64,000 nt of DNA from the NCBI GenBank assembly GCA_964304625.1, contig OZ199840.1, positions 7,633,744-7,697,743 of the forward strand, read 5' to 3'. This stretch comes from Kudoa neothunni. Taxonomy: Eukaryota; Animalia; Cnidaria. Of this stretch, positions 4,295-50,191 are shown in pieces. A model generated the notes under the pieces. It was not told the DNA's origin and ran no database searches. It worked only from the letters and a program-made list of their open reading frames with translations. Position 1 is the first letter of the stretch. Every line of letters starts with the position of its first letter. The position numbers and the translations under genes were made by a program.

Positions 4295-5447
4295 CTAGCG
4301 CGAACTGCCCAGCGTTGCTTGGGGAAGATTTTGCCTAGATACGCTTTTTAATAGCATTCAAAAAATATATTGAAGTTTTGAATCAACCCATAGAAACAAA
4401 ATAACTAAAAAATTTTATCCATCATACTTCAACTATTTGGATTAAGCAATTTAAATTATGATCATTTCTTTGAAGAAGGAGCGTTCATTTAAAAATTTCG
4501 TGGCTCGGCACCAACGCTAAATAACATAAGGTTAGCATCGTATTTTTTCATTCCCAAATTATTTAAATTCCGTTAAAGTGTTATCCAAAACGTTGTTTTT
4601 TGACTAGGGGATTTTTAAAAGTCGAATTCTGGCCCGGCTCTGGAACTGTGTGCACCACTAACTTTTGAAGAGATAAAAAAATAGAGGAAGTAATAGAGAT
4701 AGAAGAAAACGTATAAAAACTAATTGATATTGCTAAAATTAGCATCGCTTGACCCGGCATAAACATTAATGCATTTCTCCCAACCAAACAGCTAAAAATC
4801 GCTTTAATATCAACATAAATAATTTATATAATTAGATAAAGTGAGAGTACAACCATCTGCATTGAATCTAATCATTGAAAGTTCAACATAGCGGACGATT
4901 TTAATGAAATCCAAGGACCCAGCGCTTGCATTATAATTCTTTAATCTATCCTATTATAACATGCTCAACCAATTCGCTATTAATGATTCGAATATAGACT
5001 TTTGTTCATATCTAAAACAATGAATAGAACTTTTAAAATATACTTATCAAGTCATATACGTTAAAACTCCACGAATAAGGAGTGTATATGTGAAAAACCA
5101 AAAATATACACGTAACATTATATACAAAGTCAGATGGCAGCAATTAACCAACATTTTATAGAGTGTATAAAGGGAAAGGTTAACTTAAACCAACCATCCG
5201 AAGGTCATAAATAGGTGTTAATCCTATTGTTGAACTCAAGTAATCTCATAAACAAACGTTGAATCGACAAAATCACCATTTTCTAAATATTTCTAGGAAT
5301 ATTTGATAGTGTGAAAACGATTTAAAGATTTGTTGAAACATTGTGATTTTTAAAAAATTTAATAAGTGTCTCTGTATAAGGAAACAAATTTGACGCACAT
5401 GCGTACTTGCTGATACATACACGGACACTTTAGCTTTATATATATGA
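4295..5447 (-). mobile_element. Non-autonomous Helitron (DINE-1/Lep1-like architecture), copy A
   Basis: Minus strand starts A|TCATATATATAAAGCTAAAGTGTCCGTGTATG and ends with hairpin CCCAAGCAACGCTGGG plus CTAG|T; the terminal ~120 nt match 15277-15394 as reverse complement. Confidence 0.8.
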
Positions 5448-21500: not shown

Positions 21501-23019
21501 GAAGGCGCCACCCGATGTGTACGATTTCTTGGTGGTTGCTCCCTGTTCTATTATCGTGCCAAAAATCGATGCCTTGCCGGAAGCCGTCACAGCTGCGGTT
21601 TCTATGTGCAAACAAACTCAGAGTATTAAACTTTAAAGTCTTTATTAAATTTTAATTTACGTTGCCGTAGGTGCTACCAGCCAAACGAGGTCTTCCAGCA
21701 TTTCCAAAACAAAAAAATCCAAAAAAGAACAATCATACATCTCCGATGAAGACTATGATGATGATTTTGTCGATCCAATAACATCAAAAGCTCAACATGG
21801 AGGTGGATTCGTCAGTGTGGAGATGAATCATGCGGAACCCATGACCTATGAAGAGAAACGCAAGCTGTCACTGGAGATCAATCGAATGCCCACCGAAAAG
21901 TTGGGTGATATCATTGCATTTTTGTCCGACTTGGAATCCGATATTTTTAAAGAGAAAAATCAATCTGAAGTTGAAATCGACTTCGATAATATGAAACCAG
22001 AAACACTCAGATCGCTGGAAAAATATGTCAAATACCTTAACAAACCCCAAAAATCTCGCAAGAAAAAACCCACAGCCTCGAGCATTTCCTCTAGCTCCAC
22101 CCAATATAGTGACAACAAAATGAGAACCACAACTAATACCAGTTCCAAGTTACCACCATCCCCTATCACCAACATATCAAATCCTCTCACGTCAACACTA
22201 AAAAAACCATCAAATTTTTCCTCCACTGGAGGAAAGTTTAAAGTCGTGTCTTCACTCCCTTTGAGCGAAGAAAGCGACTGTTCCGATGACGAAAATGGTG
22301 AAACAACAAATATCTCCAAAAAACCATTGTCAGCTTTATCCAAACCCACATCAACCCATTCTTCTACTATGGTCAATACATCTTCTATTCCTAATGTCCA
22401 CTCAAATATTTCCATCCCAAAATCTTCGTCCAATAATCCGAGCAATGTAGTTTCTTCTAACAAGTTATCAGTTCCCACACCCAATACCGCCTCTAAACAT
22501 GTTGCAAATAAACTTACGTTCGATACGGTTGATCTTTCACTCCTGCCGTCATCCATGCTAGATACTTCAAAAAAAACCGACTTTTCATCTGTCGACCTCA
22601 TTAACGAAGCGAAAGCTTCAGTCAAACAACAAAAGTTAGCCAATTTGAACTCCACTGTCACTCACACCACTGCCGCCTCTTCTACAACTAGCAGTGAAAA
22701 CGACAGCATCATCAAAAGTCAACAGTATACTCCGGTGACCTTTTCAAATTCTTCCGGTGAATCTCCGTCCGTAAATGGTCGATTCAGCAATAGACACACT
22801 TTATCTGTCCTAACGTCGTCCAATTCAACCGGAGTCGATACATCAAGCAATAAACCTGAATTACGAGGTGATACCAATGCTCCACGAGCACCCACCACTA
22901 TCGAAGAGAGAGAACGTATGAAACAAGAAGAACGTCAACGACGTCTTGCTGTTGCGTCTACCACGCATTCTAACAAAATCAGTGGCGACATGATTCCTTC
23001 CTTTGATGAAAAATTGTAA
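18597..23019 (+). CDS. BET-family protein (BRD4/fs(1)h-long-like): BD1, BD2, ET domain and C-terminal P-TEFb-interacting motif
   Basis: BD1: [31 protein letters not shown]...NCYTYN, split by introns 19020-19112 and 19260-20549. BD2: [18 protein letters not shown]...PMDL...RYNPPDH. ET: [18 protein letters not shown]...[20 protein letters not shown]-terminus [12 protein letters not shown]...[10 protein letters not shown]. Confidence 0.95.
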
Positions 23020-28712: not shown

Positions 28713-30956
28713 TCTTTAAAATTTGATACATAGACCGATACATTACATTTATACCTTAATGACTTTCATTTTTCGTCCATAACATCCTAAATTGTGTCAT
28801 GTTACATGCTGTGCGCAAGACATATGCGTGCGTCTTCAATTATTCTGAAGTATACTGTGCTGAAATCTATTAATTTTAGCTAATTTAATCATAAGATAGT
28901 GTTTAATATTCTTACTTAATTTCAATACACCATTATAACCTAAATAAGTCGTATAATTTAACAAAAAAGTAATTTGGTAGAAAAAAAATGCATATAACTC
29001 TTTGAGAAAGCATTTTAAAAACTTTTTTTATATAAAGTATAATTAAATACATTGTATTTTAGTTTATAAATTTTTTTTTGAACGATTAAAAAATTATATA
29101 AAATGATATATTAAAGTTATTAAATTTATCATAACTATACAAATTCACTTTTACTAAATTGTATAATTATTTAATCGGTTAAGTAGTATTATGTATAAAA
29201 AAAATAATTAAACACATTTGTTATATTTTATAATGAAATTAACGAAAATACAACAATAATAAAAAAATGAGTAAATAACAAGTAATTAATATATAGTAAT
29301 ATACAATCATAAGATTTGTTAAGTATAAATTTTACTAATATATAAAAAATATTATTTTTTATTTCTAAGTTATTTTTTAATTTATAATTTATTATATCAT
29401 GAAACCTAACGTTAAAGTAAATTGTTGCTACATAACACAATTTTTTATACATGCACCATGAGATAGGTTCCTGATTGTATATATCCTGTATTTCAAACGT
29501 TGTAGATTTTATTCAACAATTATAAATACGAATACAATAAATAAATATTTAACAATAATTAGTATACTAATAAATCAATTAATATAAAAAAAATACGACA
29601 AATTATTCGTCAAAGTAAATTGTTAGGTAGAATAATCAATTGTGATTTTTCGGATATTGCATATATTTATTAGTACGCCATAATAAGTAACTCCAATAAA
29701 ATATGATTAAAAATAAATGAATCAGATATAACGATGTTTTCGTATTTCACGCAAGCGCATATTATCGACTGATGGACTATAAGTCAACTATACTCAATTC
29801 TTTAAATATGTTGTGAATTATTGTTTAATGTTATCTATACAATGTCACAGAATTGAAACTTTATACGTTTGCCATAACGACCTGTTGTTGGATTATATTG
29901 ATAAAAAAATATTACTATGAGTACGCCATTTTCTATGTGAATCATTACAATATTCTACAATTGTTGTCTACCATAATTCGATGGTTTAATTATTGACAAT
30001 TAAATAATTTATTTATGAAAAATGTTAGGAAATTAGAAATTCACATCATACAAATTAGGTTTTTGTTGAAACGACGTCATTAAATGAACTCATAAGTTAA
30101 TTTTTAATAACTATCAATTCATTTAAAAATAAAGATATTGCACATTTATGGAACGATATGTATAACTTCAAACACGCAAAAAGAACTACTTAACTAATCC
30201 GCGAATTAATTCATTTACAGATTAACAATCAATAAGTAGATTATAATTGTGTCGGTATTCACACATTTGGTCGGTATTTATTCTAGTGATAATCACAGTT
30301 ATTATTCATTATCATAGTATAATAGAATTAATTATTAATAATAGAACACTTGTTTGCTTTATAAATAAGTTTTTTTCGTTGGTAACATACAAAGCCCTTT
30401 CTATGCTATCCAAATATTTGTTTTATTCTGATGGAAGATCCCCAGAGTCTGACTGGGGGATTAAAAAATACCTGGCTAATGTAGATATGTGAAACAAATA
30501 ACATTATTCGAGTACAAATTCCCTAATGTATAGGGGAAACCTAAATCCACCTATTTATGTTATTGTTGAAAGTAAACTATTAAGTATAGCCTAGTTATTT
30601 TAATGGTGGCGGTGATTACCTCATCAGAATACACAAAACAGCCGCTCACCGAACAAAGTCCGATGTTGATATTTTAATCCCGTCGTCTTTGGCGGTCATA
30701 GCAATTTCGTGAAAAATGATTTTACATCATGTTTTTAAAAGTTTTTTTTAAATTAATTAACAAGTTTGCAAAGAATAAATAAACTCTATAGAATAGTTAA
30801 CAAAAAATTTGAAATATATTTCTTGAATTATGTTAATTGTAATATGCTTATATGGTGCAAATGCGGCGGCGCAAACGTCGTTTTATGGGCGTTTCCAATA
30901 AATCGGTGGATTTCGTTTAATCATCAGTCGTCGTCAATTACGCAGTAACATTAGAA

Positions 30957-31268
30957 ATGTCTGGAAGAGGTAAAGGAGGAAAAGGTCTAGGAAAAGGTGG
31001 TGCTAAAGCCCACAGAAAGATCATTCGTGAATCTATCAGAGGAGTCACCAAGCCAGCCATTAGAAGAATCGCTAGAAGAGCTGGTTGCAAACGTATCGGT
31101 GGTCCAGTATACGAGGAGTGCAGACAAGTCTGCCGTCTCTTCCTTTCCAAGGTTGTTGGAGATGCCATCTGTTACACCGAACATGCCAAGCGCAAGACTG
31201 TCACTGTTATGGATGTTATCTATGCCCTCAAAAGATCCGGACGTACTTTGTACGGTTTTGGAGTCTAA
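30957..31268 (+). CDS. H4: Histone H4, highly divergent, intronless, solitary
   Basis: 103 aa, gapless against canonical H4; [16 protein letters not shown] tail, [18 protein letters not shown] and GRTLYGFG retained; CCAAT at 30895-30899. Confidence 0.97.
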
Positions 31269-31448
31269 TTTTTGTTATTACTAACATCTCTTTTTTGTTG
31301 ACCAACTTTTCATATGTATATTTCGGTGTCATATATTGCGTTTTTGTTTCGCGTGCTGTTTTCGGTCTGATTATTGATTTTACTGGTGCTACTGCGTGTT
31401 CGTCGCTCCTGCTCGAGTCTTGAGCGTTTAAGTTCGCATTTTTTTGCG

Positions 31449-32359
31449 TTATACTTGCTCTGTTGTTGTTTTTATTTTTCCCAAATTGGGTAATCGTAAA
31501 TTATTAAAATAATTAAAGTGGACCATTGAAATTTTAGGATCGCGAACATAGCATTGATTGATGACACTGGCAGGGTCAATAAATATATCTTGACAAAGTA
31601 TTGAAAGTTGAGGTAAAACACTTGATCGCGTTTTCCAAAAGTTAGGATCGACTGATCTTGTTAAATCTTTCGCCTCTTTACATAACAAATCGAATTCATT
31701 CTTTAGTTGTCGCCTGTCTTTAATCCGTAAAAAGTAACAAAGATCATCAGCATTGAAATGTTCAATTGAAATTATATCTTTTGAATCGAGATTTTTAGAT
31801 ATTGAACATTTTAGTTCATTAATAATTTTGTAGCAAATAGTTCTTGTCGATTCCAAAGTCATCCTTTATCCAGTTACAAATTTTCGAAGTACAATTCTCC
31901 TCTGTTTCAATTATTTTTGAAAAATCACATAATGGAGTAAGTCCATTGATTAAAATATTTATAGAAACCATCAAAATTATTATTTTTAAGGTGTATCAAA
32001 AAAGAGTGTTTCGCTTTCCTATTTTTTAACGTAGGGATGAAAATTTCATGAATAATATGTGAAAAACAAGAGATTCTGGCGATATGAGGTTTCATAATTT
32101 TCAATTCGATATAATATTTTTTCATGTAAGATGCCGAGTCAGAAATAATAGCGATACATTGTATATGTCTCGAAGAATCTAACATAATAGTTTTGCGTCT
32201 ATCTGTGGAACTATCACGGAAACAGGCCAAAATGCTAAAAATTGGTCGGTTTTTAGCATCTGGGAACTTGTCAATTATTAAACTAAATATTTTCCTTAGA
32301 TTGCTTTCTTTATTAATCGAAGAAAATGGAAGGCCATCAAAAGCAACTATTTTAACCAT
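31449..32359 (-). pseudogene. Fragmented hAT transposase (DUF659/CGGBP1-like)
   Basis: FDGLPFSSI, IISDSASYMKK...HIARISCFSHIIH (D and C..H motifs) and FWKTRSSVLPQLSILCQDIFIDPAS (hAT dimerisation-like), split over frames. Confidence 0.7.
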
Positions 32360-43921: not shown

Positions 43922-46900
43922 TTAATGTTGATAAATATGAGAACAGCGGTTATATAGCTCTCTTTCACCCCGTCTTCGTTGTCGATAGTGCAGAAATAAG
44001 GCAAGGAACAAACTACCAAAAATCAATCCCAATATTACTGAGCCACTTACCCAAATCTTTTTATATACATTACTTTCAGTGTGGTATTTATCATTCGGAT
44101 GGATGCTTTTATTGTGATTATCCGTAGGGTTAACGGGAACAATATCATTGAGGTTGGAAGGTAAGGGATTCTTTTGAGTTGAATCCATTGTTTTATTGTG
44201 TTTTGATTCGAGTGTAAGTAAAATGTTTTTGGTCAAATTCAAATGATCACCGAGAATATTTGAAAATTCCATGTCAATTACAAACAAATCATCTGGAAGA
44301 TGCTGAAGGTAATCATTGATGGACGGGTCGAAAAGGTTTGCTTTTCTTGTAAAACGTGAAACACTTATATTAATTTCCTCAGTTTTATCATCAATGGTCC
44401 TAAGGGGATCTGTTTCATCTTTTTCTAACGAACTCAGATTTTGCTTAGTTTCGTCGATGATGAAGATGAGATTTTTCATTTCGACTTCTAGATTAGCCAC
44501 AAAACTATTATGTTTGTGAAACTCAGTGATGTAGTAGATTTGTTTTTGATGGTAGAATTGTTTTACAGTATCTCGAGTGACAGCAAATTGATTGGTGTAG
44601 TTTTGGTACTTTTCAAGCAACGACTGATGTTGTTGTTGTATAAGGGCTGGTAGTTGGTAGGAGAAAATTGTTTTGATTTTATCAACTGTTTCTACAATCT
44701 GATTATAATACGTAACAAAAAAGTTAATGTTGATTTGTGTCAATTTGGATAGATCAATATCAGTTTCATTTTTTGTTTGTTTGAGTTTCATCGATAGATA
44801 GTCATGGGCTGAATTGATATGGGATTTGACCGAACTGAATTGTGAGTGTAGAGTGTTTGTAGCAGCAGCTAGTTTGTCCGATCTAAATTTAAGTTTGGAA
44901 GCAAAATTTTCTATTTGCCTCAGTTTTTCCCAAATCTCGGGCGCATCAGATGTGTAATCGTCAAAAATTTGGTTTATATCCTTGGCTTGTGTTTTGAGTT
45001 GGATTTTTAGATTCTCCATATGAGTAAAGAAATTATCAATGTCCACCTCAAAATTTTTCATATCTTGTTTCATTTGGCTGAGCGTGTTGTTATGATGGAT
45101 AATATTATTGGAAAGTTCTTCTAGTTTTAGGGCCACATTGTTATGATCGGAGTTTTGGGTTATTAATGCAAATGGTGAGGAAAAATCTTTCATTTGTCGA
45201 CTATTTGAAATAAGCAATACATTTACCTGTTCTTTTTTGATGTCAAATTGCTTTTTTTTGTTTGTAATGTTGCTGTAGTTGGATTGCAGGTTTTTTAGCT
45301 GTGAAAAGAGTGATGAGACATTATTACAACCTTGGGCAATCTCATTATTGTATTGTGTAAAAGTATGTTCAATCGAAGGAATCGAATCTAGCGACTGCTC
45401 GATGAATCTATTAGAGAAAAGGTTTTTAATGTGGTTGGTTTGATTGCGTGCGGTATCAGTTTCATTTTGGAAATGTGCTTTTTTCGAATCGCAATCTTTA
45501 AGTATAGGTTCCATTTTTCGATTTAAATATACCAACCGGTCGGTCATAGTTTTATTTCTAGCGACGAATTTTTCTGCGTGGGTTTGGTATTTTATATTAA
45601 ACTTATCATGGTTTGCTTTCACCTTGTCTAGTTGATCACGTAGAACTTCCAAAAAATGGTTATTATGAATTTTAATCCAGCGGTTATTCGCCTCAATTCT
45701 GTAATTAGAATACATCTGTAGAGAATTGTCTAATGTGGTTCTAAGTAAACTAATTTCAGCCAAGTCGTTTTCAGGATTGTACAAAGTTTTGTTGTATAAA
45801 TCCACAATTATATTCTTTTGTTGTTGATTGAAATTAAGGTTAGCTGCATCAATCTTTAAATTAGCTACATATTTTTCACATAAAGGAACTGGATCTTTTA
45901 TGGAATAATTGCAGGTATATCCTCGTAATATCTTGCTACAACAGTGGAATAAACGCGAGTCGTTGAATGATTTCTCAATAGTGAGATCATAAAAATTAGT
46001 AATGTCCAGATAGATCCTTTGATTTTGAGTTTGTTTTGATTTAAAATTGTTATCATAATGAGTTTCTCGTTTACCGATCTCTTTATCAAGAGCATCTAAT
46101 TCGTGAATGATCCCATCAAGTTGACGTTGTAATTCGGCGGACATTTCCATTTTTATGGATGCATACTTTATTTTATCATCGTTTAATTCGCTGAGGAACT
46201 GTTGTTTAGAATTAAGGATTGATTGCCGCAAATTTTGAAGGTTTTTTATTAAATCCAGATGTTTTAGTTTATTTTGGTGGGTAATTTCGTCAATTGCGTT
46301 CAGTAGTTTTAAGTTAAGGCTGGATATTAACTCTCCCATTACGGCATGTTTGTTTCGTAAACTCTCCAAGTTATCCAAACGCTTCTTTAACGAAATTGCA
46401 TCAGAAAGAGCCCCTGAATGATATATCTCTGGAGTAAACTCAAGGTACTTTAATGGTACAAGCAATTTGTCCTTCGTAGAAGTGGTATCCAAATTATACT
46501 TTTTGTGAACTTTTGAAAATTGCTCATGATAATTCTCGTATTGTGACATAAGTTTCAGGATTTTTTTTTCATCTTCCTCCACTGACTTGATTGCTAAATT
46601 TTTTTTCCCAACCAACTGATGGATTTTGTTGTTGTGCTCGTCGTTGGTGACGGTTTTATCGTTGACCAGTTGAATAATGTGCTCTCTAACTTGGTTATAA
46701 ATGGAATATTGTAGTTCAATTGAACCAAAATGAGAGTGGATTTGTGTGTAAAGCGATTTAATTTGTTGTTCCATGTCAACCAACTGACCGTACCAAAGTT
46801 CAAACATAATATTTTGGAAGACTATTGGAAAATTGTAAGTGATAATTCTGTAGTAGAAATCATTGCTTATAATATTGAAAGGTTTATCCCACAACTTTAC

Positions 46901-49900
46901 ATCCTTTTCAGTGTAGGTTTCTCGTAGTTTATGAAATCTTTCGACGTATTCGTTCACATTTCTGGTTAAATCATCGATAACTCCAGCTATATACTCAGGA
47001 GGACTGACACTAGTAACCGCTTGAGGGAATTTTTTAATTCGATTGTACCTAATTTTTATTGATTCATAAAGTTGTATGAATCTAATATGACGGAATAAAG
47101 AGTTCACACCTTCGTAATCATCTTTATGATACTTATTTTGAAGATGTGAATCCATTAGTTGCTTGATGTGATTTACGGTGGACTTCAAGCTGTTCATATT
47201 GGTAGTTGAGGAAGTTGAGTCAAGAAGCAAAGTGCGATGGACGTCAAATTGCTCTATTTTGGTGAGTAATGAATCCATTTCTAGATCAGTGCTATTGAAT
47301 TTGCTGTCAATATCAGAATAGCTATTGAGTAGCTTTTCACATTCGTCGGAAACATTTTCCAACTCACTCATATTTGTTGCCAAACTAATGTCAAACTGGC
47401 AATGAATACTTTGTTCGTGAATTCTAGTCAATGTATTAATTGTGTTGTTGAACAGATTTAGGTGCTTGATTTTGTATTGGGAGAATACGGTTGCCTCGCG
47501 ACTAGCTTCTTCATTTAAATTGGACAAATGCTTGAGGTAGGAGTTGATTTGGCTGTCCAACTGAGACAATATCGTATCAGATATTTCGGTCAGTTCGGCT
47601 GAACAATCAATACCATAAAATTTATCACAGAATTCAACCAAAGATTTCATATGTTGTTGGATATCATTCTTTTGCTCGGTTAACTCGTTGAGTAATGATT
47701 GATATCGGTGAGTGGGACAGTCTTTGTCATGATATTGGAAATATATTTGTGTAAGAACAGGATTTATTTTTTTATCAACTAACGCAAATCGGATAGAGAA
47801 ATGTTTTTTACGCAATTTCACCAAATGTTGAATGGAATTAAGGCGTTGCAGAATACCAGAATATTGAGCGTCAAGTTGATGTAGATCACTAAGATTTTCG
47901 GAGATAAATTGACTGGTACTTGATAGATAACCCGTCGATTGCTCCAATAATTGTTCCAATGCTTCTAACAGATCATTGATCGAAGATAATTGGTCGTCTA
48001 AGTCTTGTTGTCGTTTTTGAGTGGTTTTGATTTTCTCTTTCTCAAGCACAATGTCATTGTATTTGTAACCAAACAACTGTTTCACACTGGAATCAACCAG
48101 TGAGTGAAAACTTTCTGGATGATCGTTTAGATGAGAAACCAGGTAGTTTCTTATATCCTTTATCTGCTTGGTGGATGGAGAATAGTTTCTTATTTGTTTG
48201 TAAACTTCCACTTCGGACTCCAGTTCGAGCATTTTTTCTCCGGCCAACGTTACACGCGCTTCAAATTTTCTATATTCACTCATAAAGTCCAATAGTTTGG
48301 CTTCTATATTTGTATAACTTCTGTGATAATGTTTCAGCGCTAACAATGCTGTTGATCTTAACAATGTTATATTAAATGGATGATAAAATTCATTATGTTG
48401 TGTAATGTTGTTCGCTTGAAGAATATATGTCGAATGCAACAGATGGTAGTTGGTTGAGAGCAGTTTTTGCTTATTTTTAATTTCGACTAGCCGATTGGAT
48501 TGAGAAGTCATCTTTTCGACTGTCAAATCAATGTTAGATGTGAACTCGGTCTTTTCTTCACCATCTAGATTAGAGAAAATTCTAGCATCCAAATAAGCGT
48601 GATTTTCCCTATAGATTGTTTCGTTAACTAAGTCCATTTGACGTTGTAATCGAAGGGTGCTATCCTTGAGGTTATATATATTGGTTTCAAGTGTTTCACT
48701 TGTGGTAGCTACCAATCTTTTCAAGTTGCTCACCTTATTTTCTATATCAGTTGCCATACTGAAAAGGTCATGACGAAGCTGTTCATTTGTTAAATAGCTT
48801 TCCGAGCCCCGCACACCGATAAGGTCAAGTTCGTATGCGTAGTGTGTCTCAAGTAATTGTTTTGAGTAGCCATCGGTCTGCGCCAGATTTTTTAACTTTT
48901 TGAGGTAGTTCATTTTAATAGTGTTTATATTTTGGTATCTATCATTTAATTTTTTAAAGTGGTTTAATTTTTCTTCCAATTGTCTTAGTGTGCTACGACA
49001 ATCATCAATCCCAGGCACAATATCAATACTATTATTCTGAATGATTTCTCCTAACGAGTTCATAATTTGTTGGCCGTATGTTGTCAAATCATACCAAACA
49101 CTTTTAACTTTCAGATGTCCTTCCAACCTGTTAGCAAGATCTAATGCATTATTGATGAATTTTACGATTGAATCGTGATTGTTTATTATATCATTTTCTC
49201 TCGATGTTATTTTGTTTTCCAGATACCATTCAATTTCATCGATATCGTTATACCATTGGTACGCAATATTCAAGTATTTATCAAAATCAAAATAAATCGA
49301 TAATGTAGGAATGGTTTGTGGGTTATTTATGTTATCCAAGTACATGGTACTAAATAGTTTTGATGCTTCATTGTAGAAGTCATTCACTTGGGTTGTTATC
49401 AACGTGATACTTTGCTCTAGACTCTCGTTGAGATCGTCCACTATTTTAGGATTGTTTTTCTCATTGGTCAGTTTTTCGGTAATTTTATCATTGCTTTCGT
49501 TCAATTCGTTGAGTAGCTTCACTTCAAGTGCGTTCGCTCGGGCCATAACCTTATGTCTTTCCGAAATAGGTAAATTCATGTATTCTCCGCAAACCACATG
49601 TATTTGTTTGATAATTTCAGATATCTTTATTCGGTGTTGCTCGATTTCATCAAAAAATTGATCATTTTTGAGATTTGAGGCTATTTGTTGTGCTTCATCC
49701 AAGTCAGGAGTATTAAATTTTCCTGTATAAGCCGTTATAATGTCAATTATGCGTTCATTAATCGATTGCATTAATCCACCAAAACTTATTATTGGGTTCA
49801 ATACAAGTATATTTGTCATATTTTCTTGAAATATCAAAGGCAACATAATTTTATCTTCTAATTGGTGGCGGCTCACTGTGAGTTGATTGTAACGAACGTA

Positions 49901-50191
49901 TTTATCCTTATAGTTCTTTCTTCTGTTGTCCATCTCAATAAAACGCTGTTCAAGAAATGAGTAGACTTCTTGAAATTGAGTTGAGTTCTCTTCTTCAGAC
50001 AATTCACAAACGTCATTAAGAATGGACGCATCCGAAACATATTGACTGGGGCTTTCGTCCAAAATTTTATTTTCCACTACCAATTTAAAAACTGAATAAT
50101 TAATTAAAATATGTACTACGCATATGTATTAGTTAATGTTGTTACTGAAAATTAGTGCCAGACATCTTAAAATGAGTTCTCCAAACCTCAT
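43922..50191 (-). CDS. Orphan ~2071-aa type-I membrane protein with a giant alpha-helical/coiled-coil ectodomain
   Basis: Exon 1 at 50191-50146 (MRFGELILRCLALIF), a 54-nt GT-AG intron at 50145-50092, then one 6.17-kb open exon. C-terminal TM IWVSGSVILGLIFGSLFLALFLHY, basic stop-transfer RQRRR and a 20-aa tail. Confidence 0.9.

Follow-up and report, generated by a model that had tools for sequence, protein, structure and literature searches.

The window analysed here, a 64,000-nt stretch of the Kudoa neothunni genome, carries a gene for histone H4 (Table 1), which a six-frame genome search placed at C3:7664697-7665008. Searching PDB chains with phmmer showed that their H4 chains match residues 1-102 of the Kudoa protein without gaps (E = 3e-47), and the histone-fold Pfam models CENP-T_C, CBFD_NFYB_HMF and TAF scored above their cut-offs on the same ORF. 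A GC-rich element and a TATA-like sequence lie upstream of the gene, and a short motif lies downstream of its stop codon. The window also contains two long ORFs, one of which bears a BET domain and, as judged from its sequence, probably forms the C-terminal exon of an acetyl-lysine reader of the Brd type. The other runs uninterrupted over 2053 residues and is unusually long when compared with the median exon of this genome (112 bp).

Table 1. Features of the window, further core histone genes of K. neothunni and H4 genes of related organisms. Positions without a prefix are those of the window; C denotes contigs of the assembly and L retrieved loci.
Feature	Position	Strand	Remarks
Histone H4 CDS	30957..31268	+	103 codons plus TAA, intronless, ATG-to-TAA ORF intact
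GC-rich upstream element GCGGCGGCGC	30863..30872	+	starts 94 bp before the ATG
TATA-like sequence TTTTATGGG (putative core promoter)	30881..30889	+	12 nt 3′ of the GC-rich element
Motif TTTCGGTGT (possible 3′-end signal)	31321..31329	+	53 nt 3′ of the H4 stop
400-residue ORF with BET domain	21817-23019	+	E = 3.7e-19
2053-residue uninterrupted ORF	43922-50083	-	no Pfam match
H3 gene	L007:1468-1887 = C1:6944180-6944599	+	139-residue protein
H3 gene	L008:1486-1905 = C3:4112201-4112620	-	identical 139-residue protein
Main H2A gene	L014:1492-1884 = C1:10023197-10023589	+	ends in SQEV, an H2A.X-type motif
H4 of relative, P0025	L019 (Logan SRR33849685)		carries A17
H4 of relative, P0123	L044 (Logan SRR31175926)		carries A17
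H4 of relatives, P0063 and P0124	L045 (ENA ERZ17095740)		more distant; P0063 carries A17

A scripted comparison with canonical H4, using as reference the protein P0082 after removal of its vector residues, revealed 28 substitutions in 102 residues and no indels, that is, 73% identity. The unchanged positions include residues 1-16, H18, R19, K20, R23, K31, R35, R36, K44, R45, Y72, H75, K77, R78, K79, K91 and R92, together with the C-terminal segment G94-G101. All the acetylatable lysines of the tail (K5, K8, K12 and K16), plus K20, are therefore retained, and the individual residues listed from R35 to R92 are those that we take to have structural or DNA-contact roles, as in established nucleosome structures. 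Most of the changes inside the fold are conservative V/I/L swaps, and 13 of the 28 would fall in helix alpha-2 if its limits are placed as in nucleosome structures. Kudoa H4 is thus exceptionally divergent for an animal. These results agree with the original prediction, made from the letters of the window, which had described an intact H4, very divergent for an animal, with the same 28 substitutions and no indels, many of them conservative, and with residues 1-16, K20, K31, R45, K77, K79 and K91 kept. The same prediction had taken the frequent C-ending codons as a sign that the gene is expressed, which was overstated: H4 has 29% C-ending codons and a GC3 of 0.39, compared with 25% and 0.40 in the HSP70 gene and 27% and 0.40 in the BET-domain ORF of the same genome. 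The codon usage of H4 is ordinary for a Kudoa coding sequence and gives no special sign of expression.

The basic patch K16-R17-H18-R19-K20, whose completeness is a feature of canonical H4 and does not define the fold, is incomplete in the Kudoa protein, where R17 is replaced by alanine and the other four residues are retained. When we examined the basic-patch motifs of the retrieved H4 proteins, position 17 was R in 288 out of 294, A in four, Q in one and C in one, and all four A17 motifs belong to relatives of the Kudoa gene. R17A is indeed the rare natural state that it had been proposed to be. The protein also contains four cysteines, C43, C54, C58 and C71.

H4 genes of the same type were present in three other samples. 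The contigs that carry them are AT-rich (21-30% GC), and their organisms were assigned taxonomically solely on the basis of the shared derived residues and these AT-rich flanks. The proteins encoded at L019 and L044 contain 26 substitutions each with respect to canonical H4, mostly common to the window H4, and share A17, C43, C54, C58 and C71 with it. The more distant P0063 contains 17 substitutions and has R17A, L37I, G41A, T71C, A83V and Q93S in common with the window, which indicates that these changes are old and have been stably kept; A17, I37, A41, C71 and S93 are common to P0025, P0123 and P0063, and so is V83 except for P0025, which has C83. In at least four sampled Kudoa-type taxa, A17 is the fixed wild-type state. 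The exact Kudoa protein was absent from a collection of 15 billion sequences. When a profile made of four sequences was compared with 5.8 billion proteins, only the clusters of these divergent H4s outranked canonical H4 among single-domain proteins; at 50% protein clustering, the divergent H4 merges into canonical clusters. A clade-specific 13-residue peptide gave 0 matches in a metagenome scan, and the peptide KGGAKAHRK gave 10 matches in JGI metagenome contigs, all of them chance matches in non-histone ORFs, so that this search yielded no further H4.

Pairwise comparison of the coding sequences showed 60 nt differences and 11 amino acid changes between the window and L019 (dN 0.081, dS 1.07), 60 nt differences and 10 amino acid changes between the window and L044 (dN 0.062, dS 1.32), and 45 nt differences and a single amino acid change between L019 and L044 (dN 0.035, dS 0.85). 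The resulting dN/dS of the window gene against these two close relatives was 0.05-0.08, values that are approximate because dS is saturated, and no pairwise dN/dS exceeded 0.2. Hence, as the original prediction of a selected gene implied, H4 is now under purifying selection, which is weaker than in other animals.

The assembly that we searched consists of four contigs of 17.15, 12.04 and 11.05 Mb and 18.2 kb, with H4 on C3. It was made from reads of infected yellowfin tuna (Weber, Paulini and Blaxter 2025, PMC12239612) and is described as 40.2 Mb in length, with an N50 of 12.0 Mb, three chromosome-scale scaffolds, 30.41% GC and a circular mitochondrial genome, at a long-read coverage of roughly 7x and a BUSCO completeness of only 40% (PMC12239612). 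Depth over the window, whose GC content is about 0.30, was about 2-6 per DNA run that contains the stretch, all such runs coming from one study, a low value that fits a minor parasite fraction among host reads. Contig C4 (18,219 bp; L023 and L031) encodes a very divergent COX1 with 8 in-frame TGA codons, which identifies it as the mitochondrial genome; its GC content is 44%, versus 30% for the nuclear genome. With default settings, ARAGORN recovered not a single tRNA from it, and in -mt mode the anticodons were mostly implausible, which suggests that this genome is tRNA-poor. A (TAAACC)n array, reading GGTTTA on the plus strand, was located at one end of C2 (C2:12039536-12040071, with 85 overlapping matches over C2:12039536-12040069) and at no other location, and no telomere repeat was seen in the initial 2 kb of any of the three chromosomes. 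This agrees with the (TAAACC)n telomere reported at a single chromosome end of the K. neothunni assembly (PMC12239612).

Searching the 40.26 Mb of this genome with either the Kudoa H4 or a canonical H4 as query returned one H4 locus, which the canonical query reached at 73% identity; counts from such genome searches are lower bounds. With the Pfam Histone model we recovered two H3 genes, an H3.3-like gene, a CenH3-like gene, two H2B genes, two H2A genes and an H2A.Z-like gene. Since no second H4 locus was found, the gene does not encode a “variant” in the sense of the histone field and must supply all nucleosomes. The new H4 variant proposed by the original prediction, that is, a paralog standing beside a canonical H4, therefore finds no support, no canonical copy having been found. 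The other possibility it had named, that the sequence is the already described standard H4 of this lineage, holds in one part: the protein is standard in its lineage, and the literature searched contains no description of it. We consider it highly probable that Kudoa H4 is the single, lineage-standard nucleosomal H4, and neither a specialised variant nor a pseudogene.

Apart from short islands, similarity among the window, L019, L044 and L045 is confined to the CDS, so that the flanks offered no synteny for comparison. At the H4 loci of the window, L019 and L044, the sequence GCGGCG(N)CGC begins exactly 94 bp 5′ of the ATG, its GCGGCG lying at 30863-30868 in the window. GCGGCG or CGCCGC also occurs 68-103 bp 5′ of both H3, both H2B and both H2A genes and of the H3.3 gene, against a background of 7 matches in 102 kb; the chance of finding it in a 50-bp window is 0.0034, and that of finding it in five independent gene families is about 5e-13. 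The cytosolic HSP70 gene also has one match, about 50 bp 5′ of its start (L024 position 3374), which implies that the element may be a general strong-promoter motif and not a histone-specific one. We regard it, from its sequence and position, as a candidate promoter element of Kudoa. The TATA-like sequence has its counterpart at L019 in TTTTATAG, placed at the same spacing, and the TTTTAT(A/G)G pattern is found in two of the three loci. Downstream of the gene, TTTCGGTGT is conserved 38-53 nt 3′ of the H4 stop in three species (38-51 nt in L019 and L044) and may act as a 3′-end signal. The same motif was also seen 3′ of the CenH3-like ORF (L010).

The histone 3′ stem-loop (Rfam RF00032, Histone3) gave no match in the window at the gathering score, none in the region 30600-31900 at E up to 10 and none at eight histone loci of Kudoa and two related organisms at E up to 1. 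The SLBP_RNA_bind domain had no match in the genome either, and control genomes were equally without a match, so that this negative is uncalibrated. Given that neither stem-loop nor SLBP domain was found, histone mRNAs would be polyadenylated, as the Kudoa H4 mRNA probably is. No read (0) of three metatranscriptomic runs with the same species label fell on the stretch, a result that speaks neither for nor against expression, and very few RNA reads have been reported to map to the parasite (PMC12239612). Purifying selection and the conserved upstream element speak indirectly for an expressed, functional gene.

We then compared H4 with the other core histones of Kudoa. The two H3 genes differ at 48 of 417 nt, all of the differences being synonymous (dS 0.81, dN 0), and their protein is about 86% identical to H3.1 and H3.3 by a hand count from the alignment. 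Its tail carries a 3-residue GAG insertion, and ARKS has become ARKT at K9 and SRKT at K27; further inside, F78Y lies beside a retained K79, and both C96 and C110 are lost, leaving zero cysteines. The ENA contig L046 encodes an identical H3 with 55-60 silent differences. Between K. neothunni and the organism of SRR33849685, 8 of 139 residues differ in H3 (dN 0.053) and 11 of 103 in H4 (dN 0.081). By these sequence comparisons, H4 is the most diverged core histone in Kudoa and is still evolving faster than H3, whereas H3 is usually the faster of the two. The main H2A is ordinary and its acidic patch is intact (E56, E61, E64, D90, E91 and E92). An intron or a frameshift divides the second H2A copy (L015) between reading frames, two in number, and the H3.3-like gene contains one or more introns. 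The remodelled core nucleosome envisaged by the original prediction is thus borne out in so far as H3 has also diverged, with its insertion and its altered ARKS motifs, and not as regards the H2A acidic patch and the DNA-contact residues of H4, which are kept.

A two-chain model of H3 (residues 42-139) and H4 (residues 20-103) reached a score of 0.82, with 0.00 for the best control; of 78 solved complexes, 51 attain this mark, as do 2 of 108 mismatched pairs, and reaching it may reflect memory of solved nucleosomes and shows likeness, not binding. The runs agreed in at least 91% of contacts, with a partner pLDDT of at least 80. Kudoa H4 is predicted from this model to pair with H3 in the usual histone-fold way. 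Residues in predicted contact with H3 account for 17 of 25 H4 substitutions versus 45 of 84 residues overall (hand count), a slight excess that we treated as not significant.

Among the partners of H4 that the original prediction had proposed to check for loss or compensation, a Dot1 domain was not found, ISWI is present, H3 has diverged as described above and a CenH3-like gene is present. The first of these results derives from a six-frame, exon-by-exon HMM search that returned no match to DOT1 (PF08123) in the genome and, like the SLBP negative, it concerns a fast-evolving genome with short exons, in which absence of a match is no proof. In the same genome, the SLIDE domain of ISWI and several genes for MYST acetyltransferases (MOZ_SAS) were recovered. 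One of the latter was detected across split exons, which indicates that multi-exon genes are within reach of the search and gives a rough measure of its sensitivity for Dot1. The failure to find Dot1, even though K79 of H3 is retained, suggests a loss of H3K79 methylation. The N-terminal exon of ISWI (L049 minus strand 4384-4857, C1 about 1234644-1235117) contains KHTRKRK, separated by an insertion from DDELLDED, where the ISWI of other animals presumably has an RHRK-type AutoN motif directly before the acidic stretch; we judged this arrangement insufficient as a sign that AutoN has co-evolved with the AHRK sequence of the tail.

The number of substitutions, unusually high for an H4, and the lack of reads in the three metatranscriptomic runs of the same species label could point to a decaying or non-functional copy of the gene. 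Such a pseudogene is hardly credible, and we regard this explanation as effectively refuted: four taxa keep the ORF intact, dN/dS is low, L019 and L044 have accumulated 45 nt differences at the cost of one residue, the DNA-contact and modifiable residues are all kept, the upstream element has been conserved at an unvarying distance from the ATG, and this is the only H4 found in a genome with full sets of the other histones. It is also very unlikely, if somewhat less so, that the gene encodes a specialised, for instance stage-specific, paralog and that a canonical H4 is absent from the low-coverage assembly. The modest coverage and BUSCO completeness of an assembly obtained from infected tuna (PMC12239612) leave room for this explanation and for a second H4 in an unassembled region, and genome-search counts are lower bounds. 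However, two independent queries, one of them a canonical H4, led to one candidate, every other core histone was recovered in one or two copies each, and the same type of H4 recurs in three other samples. Moreover, the profile search of 5.8 billion proteins showed no intermediate, AT-rich canonical-like relative in the clade, and the promoter element of H4 is that of the bulk core histone genes.

A different kind of alternative accepts the gene as the standard H4 and takes its divergence as adaptive and not as tolerated drift, the four cysteines and the neutralised basic patch giving chromatin a new property, e.g. redox-sensitive, unusually open or unusually compact, suited to the parasitic life cycle. 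Cysteines are absent from 248 of the 255 sampled H4 cores and four or five of them are conserved in Kudoa-type proteins, Kudoa H3 has lost both of its own, and the higher dN of H4 with respect to H3 inverts the usual order, all of which speak for adaptation. We nevertheless find it unlikely, since every pairwise H4 dN/dS is at most 0.2, the changes are mostly conservative V/I/L swaps and the whole proteome is evolving fast. Indeed, the terminal branch leading to Kudoa HSP70 in a tree measures 0.68, the median being 0.066, and the best identity of this protein is 78%, to arthropods and rotifers, which points to an animal-like lineage and to fast evolution across the proteome, in line with the rapid protein evolution reported in parasitic cnidarians (PMC12239612). 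A nematode origin was rejected, as neither the spliced leader SL1 nor TTAGGC repeats were found, and an arthropod origin had no support from the cuticle domain Chitin_bind_4, which gave no match here or in its control.

If Kudoa H4 is taken as the single, lineage-standard H4, its 28 changes would have arisen on the long, fast-evolving myxozoan branch. The intronless gene would be driven by the TATA-like promoter and by the GC-rich element common to the core histone genes. Its product would pair with its own diverged H3 through the ordinary histone-fold handshake, DNA would be wrapped by the unchanged DNA-contacting arginines and lysines, and MYST acetyltransferases and ISWI would be available to act on the kept tail lysines. 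Together with the co-diverged H3, this H4 would build all nucleosomes.

The consequences of R17A are known from Drosophila, where replacement of all H4 by the R17A form gave no adults and produced small, delayed larvae with abnormal chromosome structure (Zhang et al. 2022, PMC9667139). H4K16ac was strongly reduced and lethality was male-biased, and according to the same study R17 reaches into a pocket of Dot1 that is acidic (PMC9667139). The engineered flies resemble Kudoa in that the same change affects the whole H4 supply of the animal, and differ from it in that the change is lethal before adulthood, whereas A17 is the wild type in Kudoa-type organisms. We propose that R17A may be tolerated because the readers of the basic patch have been lost or changed: a missing Dot1 would lift one constraint, and the remaining ISWI and MYST enzymes would have to work with an A17 tail. 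The causal tie between Dot1 loss and tolerance of R17A is one that we infer; ISWI, which also reads R17-H18-R19, is retained. Putting these observations together, one may tentatively imagine, although as a whole we would lean against it, a rewired H4-tail system in Myxozoa, at least in Kudoa, in which the charge of R17 has been lost, Dot1-dependent H3K79 methylation no longer takes place, A17 is accommodated by adapted ISWI and MYST enzymes, H4 has become the fastest core histone with four conserved cysteines, and the stem-loop/SLBP system has been replaced by polyadenylated mRNAs under the GC-rich element.

Kudoa H4 is an orthologous, lineage-standard H4 in an unusual sequence state and not a new class of protein. 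With canonical metazoan H4 (PDB 1eqz_D and 6c0w_B) it shares its length, an identical tail through K16 and the DNA-contact residues. It differs from it in having A17 instead of R17 and four cysteines instead of zero, in being single-copy and in that no 3′ stem-loop was found. Other departures from the near-universal H4 are the divergent H4s of protists and H4.V of Oryza; the latter is described as a paralog with tissue-specific expression, unlike the only H4 found in Kudoa. In Myxozoa, histones form clades of their own, as stated in a survey of Myxobolus bejeranoi (Maor-Landaw et al. 2023, PMC10454682). The variants that its text names for the tree are H1/5, H2A, H2B, H3 and H5, without H4, and it gives no residue-level account of H4, R17 or cysteines (PMC10454682). 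In the literature searched, we came across no account of a myxozoan H4 at the level of residues, no natural R17A and no report on the status of Dot1 in myxozoans.

Myxozoan proteomes are known to evolve fast, so that a diverged H4 in this group is unusual and not inexplicable. Still, H4 is a textbook case of a protein kept unchanged by the number of its partners, and a change of 27% in the only H4 of an animal is informative. An animal H4 that naturally carries A17 represents a ready-made experiment on which of these constraints are universal. It raises the questions of how much of the requirement for R17 stems from Dot1, ISWI, MOF or fibre folding, of whether H3 and H4 can leave the canonical state by co-evolution and of how histone genes are regulated when the stem-loop/SLBP system is absent. 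From an applied point of view, Kudoa species are parasites of fish muscle, and the histone surfaces of the parasite differ from those of the invariant H4 of its host.
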